NCBI GenBank assembly: GCA_900088475.1
Contig: FLMG01000484.1
Coordinates: forward strand, 45,692 to 109,691
Reading direction: 5' to 3'
DNA: 64,000 nt
Source of the DNA: Hyphochytrium catenoides
Taxonomy: Eukaryota; Protista; Hyphochytriomycota
Part shown: positions 4,125 to 6,644 of the stretch, piece by piece
How positions within the stretch are numbered: the first letter of the stretch is position 1
Layout of the letters: each line of letters opens with the position of its first letter
Made by a program: the position numbers and the translations under genes
Notes under the pieces: model-generated
Database searches by the model: none
Told to the model about the DNA's origin: nothing
Seen by the model: only the letters and a program-made list of their open reading frames with translations

Positions 4125-6644
4125 TCAACTTGTACATTCAAAGACCGGACTGCCAAGGACACTCATGATGGGGATTACACCTAGCCCTACGTCACAAAAG
4201 GAGTTGTCAGCTTACAGTGATCACCATTGCAACAGATGTATGGAAGTGGAGAGACCGCGAGGGCACACACAGCATCAATAAGTTTAGGAGAGTCAAAGAT
4301 GAGGATATTGAACCCCATGGCCAAAGCGCACTTACCTGGCCCAAGAGGTGCTGACAAGAATCCGTTCTCTCTTTTGGGAGCTCGTTCCGCTATGCTTTTG
4401 GTGACGTAACTGTTAAAGTCCGTAGACGCAAAAAGAAAACGAGGCGGAGTCGAGTGCGCTAGGTGAGAGATAGCTGCTGTCACGATGTCTCCTCCCCAGG
4501 TGTCTTCGATGTTCATAGCTATTCCCAGACTGAGGCAGAGGTCTCGAATTTGCCGGGCTTTTGTAAGGCCCCCAACCTTCGAGATCTTTAGGTTGATTAC
4601 GTCGGTAGCAGAGTCCCCGATAGCGCGAAGCAGGACCTGATAATGTATATGATGTGGGCCAAAGAAGTTTAGCTCAATGCTACTATTGCTAGTAGACACA
4701 GAGGAAGTCGCTGTAAGCGCAAGGGGGATCAAAAAGGCCGAGACTACCTAGCACTGGAAGAAGGGACAGAGTCATTATGGCAAGAAGGGCGCTCTTTCAA
4801 ATTGAGACACATAACCAAACATCTTGGCTGCTTCTCCTGGCAGTCTGGCTGCAAGAGCAAAACTCTTAGGAACTTGGTCGTAGGGGTTTTCACGCTACCT
4901 TAATATCGGTGATGCTTTCGTCAAGGATAAATGGCTTAGTGCACATACGTCTGACACTAAGATTCTCCTCATAAGAGTCACAAGGCTGTTCTATGTAGAC
5001 ATCCACATCCCTAACGCCCTCCACCACTCGCACTGCCTCATGCATGAGCCATCCGGTGTTGGCATCTGCCATAAGGACATCACCCTGTGCGCAAGCCTGA
5101 CGGCAGTGAATGATCCTTGCAATGTCTTCTTCAGGATTGCTACCAACCTGAATGTTTAGCGTTCGTAAGGTGTCAAGAAGCCTAAGATGGGCGTACCAAG
5201 CCTGAAAGTGTCAGATCATCTTTGGGCAACAAAATCGGAAGGAAAGAAAGGATGAGGGTAATGGTAGTCGAAAACGAGAAAGAACAGAGAAAACCGGCGT
5301 GCCAAGAAGGAGCTTGGTTTGTGGGAGAAAGAAAGTTTGTCTACTGCCCAAGAAGAAGTAGAGGATGTAGATTGGCAATCGGATGCGGTGATGGCTATGA
5401 GAGGCGGTATCCTGAGACTTTCCTTGAGCTGGAACTTTCTATATCCCTCACTGCGGTACCTCCTAATTGACTCCGCCATGCGCTCCGGAGTGTCTTGAGA
5501 TATCGCCCTACACCACGATAACTTTAGATCCCATCGAAAGGAGCAGAGACCCATATCATGACTGCGATACAACGAGCGGCAGATAGCGTTGGCGCTCTTT
5601 AGAGATCAAGCAAATAATCGAACGTTGGTAGAATAAAGCTGGGTAAGGGACTGTCACGGATAAAGTGGATCTCACCTATAAAGAGGATAGCTTTCTCCAA
5701 ATCTTCCACCCATAAGATGGGAGATGGGTTGGCGCGTTACTTTGCCTAGAATGTCCCAACAGGCGATGTCTGTTGCATTCCAACGGGAAGGGAGACGCGC
5801 AAAGGACTGAGTTAGCCATTACATCTTTTCCAAGAGATGGATGCCAACACAAGAGGAGACGGGGTTATACCGAGGCCATTCTCTTCTGACGTGCACAGCC
5901 AGAACTAGACAATAGCAGATAACATCTAGGGCGACCACTTTGTGGGTGCACAACCTAAAGGGGCCTTGACGTAAGGGTGTCCTCTCATGGCAGCGTCCAT
6001 CAGAAGGTTGATTTTCAGAAGTTCCGTGGGGTCCTGGCCTAACAAGGTAGGAGCCAGCTCTCGAATGCCCTCTCTGCGGGGCACACGGAACCGTTCATCA
6101 GTCAAGAAGAGAGAGGAGACCAAGGGAGAGGTGTGTGCAAGAGCGCGTACGGTGTAGGAGAGGCGGAGAAATGAAACAATGGAGACAAGTCACGCTCCGA
6201 ACTATAGGCTCTAGCCCACAGTCCTACTCTACGGAGAGTGAGCAAACATAGAACGAGTTAGAGGAGAAGGGCCCCCGTCCTGGGTAGCACCTGCAGATAG
6301 GCTCTGAGAATAGATTCGAAGGGAGCGTCAAGACATCGCGCTTCTGCAGACCTTGTTCCTTTAGCATATGCTGGCAGATAGGCCGGGCCCAATGGACAAT
6401 TCTCTCCCCAGCCCACGACCCCTTCATCAGTCTCCACTCGCACCACGGTGGAGTCAAAGACTGTTACTGAGTTGCCTCCAGACCACGAGTCTGCGGACAA
6501 GCAAGGCGTAAGAGACCGCATATGGAAGATGAGCCTCCGAGCTAGGTAGGAGTCAGAAGCGATGGAACCTCTTTTGTCGCTCTTACATTTTCCTTCGACC
6601 AATGGGAGATCTACTTGGAAGACGGAGATCTTGGTGATCTTCAT
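4125..6644 (-). CDS. Mandelate racemase/muconate-lactonizing (enolase superfamily) enzyme, cis-3-hydroxy-L-proline dehydratase / hydroxyproline-betaine epimerase-like, 8 exons
   Basis: Spliced protein [61 protein letters not shown]...[10 protein letters not shown]...[10 protein letters not shown]...ADANTGW...IEQPC...ILDESI...NLKISKVGG...EDTWGG...GPGLGV. Metal-binding D/E/D residues and the catalytic Lys pattern are present. The substrate is inferred from recalled family resemblance. Confidence 0.88.

Follow-up and report, generated by a model that had tools for sequence, protein, structure and literature searches.

Known GA-AG introns

Introns of the GA-AG kind are already known in humans, Blastocystis, copepods, tunicates and dinoflagellates; what is new in the present case is the lineage, that of Hyphochytrium catenoides, and since the kind has been documented a specialist would be mildly, not greatly, surprised by it. 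The introns of dinoflagellates have a G after the 3' AG. Donors of the GA and GC type occur in these organisms, an example being Symbiodinium minutum, in which a single dynein gene may have as many as 65 GA-AG introns (PMC5100056). Conserved U2-type GA-AG introns are present in human ITPR1 and the FGFR genes (PMC4176328). In Blastocystis, 59 GA-AG introns (ca. 0.16% of all) are recorded for subtype ST1 and nine with EST support for ST7 (PMC5608401), while in the copepod Eurytemora affinis the GA-AG value is 3.2% and such introns, in an AG|GAA context, are abundant in Oikopleura dioica too (PMC7072748). Functional GA-AG introns with the AG|GAA context have precedents in these studies (PMC7072748, PMC4176328, PMC5608401). 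The initial annotation of this locus had described GA donors as rare, and as common only in lineages such as the dinoflagellates. This is incomplete: they form a rare class in Blastocystis (PMC5608401), and Eurytemora and Oikopleura have them frequently (PMC7072748).

The intron described here lies in a 64,000-nt window of H. catenoides contig FLMG01000484.1, the window being the whole stretch of DNA that was analysed. As with those of FGFR and ITPR1 it combines a GA donor in a U2-like consensus with an AG acceptor, belongs to a conserved, functional kind of gene, and has a canonical-looking GT a few bases from the donor (PMC4176328). The helper GT of FGFR, however, is situated 6 nt upstream and splicing there is experimental (PMC4176328), whereas the GT found here is 4 nt downstream in a very poor context and the case is known from DNA. 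The likeness to Blastocystis, also a stramenopile, is in the very small GA-AG fraction; Blastocystis has GT-AG, GC-AG and U12-type introns as well (PMC5608401). It is a distant stramenopile lineage, its GA-AG set rests on transcripts (PMC5608401) and ours on DNA, and this comparison is one of intron classes and not of end motifs.

The dehydratase gene

The gene carrying the intron (Table 1) has been modelled as 1104 nt or 368 codons, compared with 367 in a bacterial homologue, and its six other introns are each GT-AG. A tblastn search with the 367-aa bacterial ORF (L004) placed every exon, and single exons matched the Pfam families PF02746 (MR_MLE_N) and PF13378 (MR_MLE_C). When bacterial genomes were scanned with exon 6, 80 loci of 59-68% identity were returned, L004 among them; the homologues carry the source name cis-3-hydroxy-L-proline dehydratase. 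The motifs KFQLKVG, ADANTGW, IEQP and LDE align with these homologues, and the predicted protein contains both domains, the K-x-x-x-K / KVG strand and the metal-binding residues D, E and D of the MR/MLE subgroup. By its predicted product, a bacterial-type sugar-acid/proline dehydratase, the gene is a cis-3-hydroxy-L-proline dehydratase-like member of the MR/MLE subgroup of the enolase superfamily. The opinion that the gene is intact outside the unusual intron has been borne out, in that the eight exons, 368 codons, six canonical introns and family motifs are undamaged, with 60-80% identity to the homologues.

A large protein collection was queried with the full-length bacterial homologue, with each exon as a row and with a 181-aa open frame around exon 7; no product of the H. 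catenoides dehydratase was found in it, only bacterial and metagenomic relatives of at most 83% identity. In a DNA search of the organism's own assembly with the whole gene, no second copy or haplotig was found, the gene returning itself only. Exon by exon the dehydratase is 60-83% identical to its nearest relatives, which are bacterial, and no eukaryotic relative surfaced; yet it has seven spliceosomal introns. It may be a case of horizontal transfer with a later gain of introns.

Table 1. Features of the dehydratase gene and of the three GA-AG introns (window positions unless another location is named)
Feature	Position	Strand	Remarks
Enolase-superfamily gene (cis-3-hydroxy-L-proline dehydratase-like), whole CDS	4125..6644	minus	8 exons; stop 4127-4125
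Exons of the dehydratase gene	6644-6587, 6490-6352, 6073-5955, 5769-5676, 5507-5423, 5147-4899, 4636-4336, 4186-4128	minus	
Exon 5	5423..5507	minus	ends ...GYRKFQLK; catalytic Lys codon AAG 5425-5423; matches HMM positions 130-165
Exon 6	4899..5147	minus	PDB 4mgg_A residues 168-246, E=6e-22; Pfam PF13378
GA-AG intron of the dehydratase gene	5148..5422	minus	275 nt, GAAAGT...ATTCAG; C+T 65%, pyrimidine-rich; stops in read-through frame
Non-canonical 5' splice site AAG|GAAAGT	5417..5425	minus	GA at 5422-5421; read and blind junction scan
GT closest to the donor, 4 nt inside the intron	5417..5418	minus	out of phase; context GGAAA|GTCTCA, 1st percentile
3' splice site ATTCAG|GT	5146..5153	minus	same 8-mer in both other verified GA-AG introns
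Possible branch-site region	5154..5169	minus	CTTAC at -22..-18 and CTAAAC at -12..-7 from the 3' end; putative, from motif scan
Best all-canonical alternative, 5-nt micro-exon GCTTG (ctttcag|GCTTG|gtacgc)	5197..5201	minus	would add Glu-Ser-Leu after the catalytic Lys
CNOT3 GA-AG intron	G000:C2328; L133 1354..1159	minus	196 nt; CAA TTC AAG|GAAAGAGTC...CGTCATTCAG|GTG TGT GAG
Malonyl-CoA-synthetase-like GA-AG intron	G000:C1814; L139	minus	322 nt; CTT GAA AG|GAAAGAAGC...ATCAATTCAG|G TAC GGA ATG ACA GAG

The GA-AG intron

Read on the minus strand, exon 5 passes into the intron as agg tac cgc agt gag gga tat aga aag ttc cag ctc aag|gaaagtctcagg (the intron start is also given as GAAAGTCTCAGG), and the intron into exon 6 as cgctaaacattcag|gtt ggt agc aat cct gaa gaa gac (the intron end also as CGCTAAACATTCAG). 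The donor bases are G at 5422 and A at 5421, and the final G of the intron is at 5148. Left in the message the intron would add 62 codons, followed by a stop. Exon 5 (5423-5506, minus) aligns to residues 140-167 of PDB 4mgg_A, and exons 5 and 6 adjoin at 167|168 of that structure with neither gap nor overlap; the junction therefore lies exactly between the catalytic Lys and Val-Gly, and the coordinates 5148-5422 originally assigned to an intron splitting FQLK|VG are exact. Apart from +2, the 5' site is complementary to the 5' end of U1, and the intron closes with a YAG (TTCAG). With +1 and +2 left out, the donor context ranks high among 171 canonical donors from the same genome (93.6th percentile); its other positions, AAG|G.AAGT, are near-optimal, in agreement with the original description of a site in which +2 alone departs from the consensus. 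The acceptor scored at the 30th percentile.

Placement of the splice junction

The junction was placed by a scan blind to the donor dinucleotide, in which all junctions that end in AG, keep the frame and contain no stop were scored with a profile built from 79 bacterial homologues. Among the 308 candidates for this intron the GA-AG junction 5422/5148 ranked first with 91.3 bits, a better result than expected by chance. The runner-up, 6.3 bits below, is a one-codon shift of it, while the best GT or GC junction reached 76.1 bits (15.2 below GA-AG) and adds nine residues. The same scan applied to the other six introns of the gene put GT-AG at the top in five, the sixth being a 0.9-bit tie of a GC-AG with the expected GT-AG junction. 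Three other boundary placements (AG-TC, GG-CA and AA-GG) yield an identical mRNA and none of the three is canonical. That the nearest GT is out of phase had been pointed out from the start, and this agrees with the scan: no nearby AG is in phase with it and no GT solution came close. We also enumerated 758 models with a micro-exon between GT/GC-AG introns, the best of which scored 175.0 bits against 183.5 for GA-AG, i.e. 8.5 bits worse. As scored here, only the GA-AG junction restores both the frame and exact collinearity with the homologues through FQLK|VG.

Several other classes of intron were considered and rejected. A U12-type intron is at variance with the 5' end, which reads GAAAGTCTC and not RTATCCTT, and with the presence of only a partial CCTTAC at -23..-18 where TCCTTRAY would be expected 10-26 nt from the 3' end. 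In the case of a stwintron, an A follows the G at +1, no internal removal creates a GT at 5422-5421, and no micro-exon model is better. IRE1-type and antisense GT-AG readings were likewise rejected.

Two further GA-AG introns

At least two more introns of this kind are present in the genome; two were located in unrelated conserved genes, one encoding CNOT3 and the other a malonyl-CoA-synthetase-like protein (Table 1); both were reached from leads and not from an unbiased sample. CNOT3 is a single-copy core gene. Its exons align to residues 62-92 and, from the second residue, 94-139 of human CNOT3, placing the junction at K92|V93. The intron has the ends CAAG|GAAAG and CATTCAG|GT, and an in-frame GT is found 6 nt downstream of the donor, the use of which would add only two residues. 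In the malonyl-CoA-synthetase-like gene the ends are AAAG|GAAAG and AATTCAG|GT, no GT is near the donor, and joining the exons gives LLER|YGMTEIGMALSNPL; the exon upstream of this intron is a weak match to residues 269-298 of malonyl-CoA synthetase 4fuq_A.

All three introns share AAG|GAAAG at the donor and ATTCAG|GT at the acceptor, while no internal similarity was found among them. GA donor contexts stand at the 93.6th and 92.4th percentiles, and the GTs near them at the 1st. In the canonical set of 171 introns, four donors (2.3%) read AAG|GTAAG; CAG|GT is found at 18 acceptors and TTCAG|GT at none. The shared 3' motif separates this set from FGFR and ITPR1, for which no fixed 3' motif is reported (PMC4176328); by comparison, the study of Eurytemora and Oikopleura likewise notes conserved positions at the 3' site (PMC7072748).

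Frequency of GA-AG introns in the genome

The assembly used comprises 61.0 Mb in 4759 contigs; the published account of the genome gives 4758 scaffolds plus the mitochondrial genome, 67,332 introns of mean length 208 bp, and a small 454 transcriptome set of 6202 contigs, and makes no mention of non-canonical splice sites (PMC5795050). A genome-wide count of GA donors had been proposed as a check, and we carried out a census of approximately 250 blind-scored junctions: 78 from kinesin genes, 168 from dynein heavy-chain genes and five more from kinesins. For the kinesin junctions the profile was made from the kinesins of this genome, every candidate junction being scored in this manner because loop indels made coordinate arithmetic on the profile hits too noisy. 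For dynein, five intron-rich genes were compared with two paralogues that lack introns and have 4383 and 4127 codons.

No GA-AG intron was found among the ca. 250 junctions, nor in the 33 kinesin loci, from which it follows that they make up less than about 1.2% of introns. GC-AG junctions, by comparison, are fairly common and number six or seven (ca. 2.6%); most read CAG|GCAAG and in none is the acceptor ATTCAG|GT. The GC-AG sites were observed at kinesin loci L096, L103, L105, L108 and L087 and at the dynein gene G000:C2408 (L125-L127). Three apparently non-canonical dynein junctions (d71, d91 and d120) were rejected since small exons had been missed. The donor profile of the 171 blind-recovered GT-AG introns shows A at -2 in 75%, G at -1 in 95%, A at +3 in 64%, A at +4 in 48% and G at +5 in 68%.

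A genome-wide search for the strict 16-nt paired end-motif gave six matches against eight for the controls at 218-278 nt, and three against four at 96-156 nt; as the pattern is at control level, the class must be tiny. Inspection covered the 218-278 nt range, in which none of the five other matches is an intron. One chance match to the end-pattern (L145; G000:C2810:1230-1890) falls in an apparently continuous retroelement gag-like CDS on a 2.4-kb contig. GA-AG introns are thus probably a very small class in this genome, well under ca. 1% of introns. Their rarity here (none of ca. 250) contrasts with their high frequency in Eurytemora and Oikopleura (PMC7072748). Dinoflagellate introns also have GA-AG boundaries, but in that group the donor rule is relaxed genome-wide (PMC5100056), in contrast to the dynein genes analysed here in which none of the 168 junctions was GA-AG.

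Two side observations may be added. The number of introns varies enormously among the dynein heavy-chain paralogues, from uninterrupted ORFs of 4383 and 4127 codons (G000:C3798:95733-108882, L114+L115; and G000:C2111, L131+L132) to genes in 40-50 or more exons, the comparison having been made with C3289, C3853, C3191, C2408 and C523. Locus L134 (G000:C3031:46500-56499) is a SEC63 gene with DnaJ and Sec63 domains.

Spliceosomal RNAs

Inspection of the 5' end of U1 snRNA had been suggested in the initial annotation. Two U1 genes were found, both with the canonical 5' end AUACUUACCUG, and one U6 gene with a canonical ACAGAGA box. These are the best scan candidates that were scored, so that a divergent variant could escape; among the U1 and U6 candidates there was no adapted snRNA. 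A U1 variant has been proposed for Eurytemora and Oikopleura (PMC7072748), in contrast to the canonical U1 genes found here. A CT-rich repeat, ctctcctcctttctctcctcc, is located directly 3' of a U1 gene (L001 1650-1700; G000:C4734).

Alternative explanations

We place the probability that the dehydratase intron is a genuine U2-type (major-spliceosome) GA-AG intron of an active gene, productively spliced at the GA, at about 70%. A rather unlikely alternative is that the true donor, or that of the other haplotype, is GT (or GTAAAG with a T dropped), the assembled base being a crippled or minor allele of a GT-AG intron. H. catenoides is diploid with a SNP frequency of ca. 0.0275 (ca. 2.75%) and coverage of ca. 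610x (PMC5795050). The haplotypes of this heterozygous genome were merged in the assembly and base 5421 could therefore be polymorphic; there is also no second copy of the gene in the assembly with which to compare it. At the given coverage, however, consensus errors are unlikely, and two unrelated genes agree with the dehydratase not only in the A at +2 but over 8 nt of the donor and a further 8 nt of the acceptor. Random T-to-A hits would strike donors of average strength with no link to the acceptor, and in this genome AAG|GTAAG represents just 2.3% of donors and TTCAG|GT none of 171 acceptors. Thus the identical ends argue against random null mutations, heterozygous null alleles and base errors, and for a functional, constrained kind of intron. 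It is also unlikely that the intron escapes productive removal, either because the gene is a recent pseudogene or because the intron, unproductive or regulated, mostly stays in the transcript or is mis-spliced at GT 5418, so that the message would be frameshifted and degraded. A GA donor is poor in the second step, the FGFR literature cited in PMC4176328 terms it a "dead-end" site, and the acceptor is only at the 30th percentile. Against this, the 368 codons, the six canonical introns and the motifs are intact, an intron of this kind is also found in the single-copy core gene CNOT3, and the context of the decoy GT (5418) is at the 1st percentile.

The remaining readings have less in their favour. 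Two GT-AG introns around the 5-nt micro-exon (GT 5418...AG 5202, GCTTG 5201-5197, GT 5196...AG 5148) would give FQLK-ESL-VGSNP, keeping the frame with no stop and using a good acceptor, ctttcag, and a fair donor, GTACGC. This model is nevertheless very unlikely, with a deficit of 8.5 bits relative to GA-AG and an insertion of three residues next to the catalytic Lys, for which the 79 homologues of the profile give no warrant. Its first donor, GGAAA|GTCTCA, is at the 1st percentile, its second intron measures only 49 nt, and it leaves the CNOT3 and malonyl-CoA-synthetase-like cases unexplained; as the best of 758 models, some such solution is to be expected by chance. That the three introns are copies of a mobile introner which brought its own ends is suggested by the identical 8-mers at both termini, but is largely refuted, since they lack internal similarity, the dehydratase DNA search hit itself only, and the end-pattern occurs at control level genome-wide, with the five other matches of 218-278 nt that were inspected proving not to be introns.

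Mechanism and significance

Returning to the preferred reading of a productively spliced GA-AG intron, it is a reasonable inference that U1 recognises the donor through the seven of eight pairings left at -2 to +6, and the first catalytic step would then run normally. An A at +2 normally makes a poor substrate for the second splicing step. That step may be enabled by the 3' context, ATTCAG followed by GT, and a conceivable aid would be complementarity between intron positions +1 to +3 (GAA) and -5 to -3 (TTC). The initial annotation had proposed that GA is tolerated when the other pairing with U1 is strong. The near-optimal donor, the canonical U1 and the two additional AAG|GAAAG introns are in keeping with this part of the proposal; what it overlooked is the 3' end. 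Since ATTCAG|GT is equally unusual in all three introns, pairing with U1 alone is probably not the whole story.

We offer more tentatively, and as a possibility on which we would not ourselves rely, that the GA-AG introns of this genome constitute a tiny, distinct class with the co-conserved termini AAG|GAAAG...ATTCAG|GT, in which the A at +2 is tolerated only in conjunction with a specific 3' context. This would represent a natural, genome-encoded coupling of the 5' +2 position and the 3' site in the second step.

If these introns are spliced as proposed, gene models of H. catenoides, built with predictors that admit only GT and GC donors, would break or distort every gene with a GA-AG intron, examples being the dehydratase, CNOT3 and the malonyl-CoA-synthetase-like gene. 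Three GA-AG introns with identical ends, in a genome with ordinary U1 and U6, would also make a small natural test set for the handling of a base other than U at +2, and could reveal whether the 3' site compensates for it.
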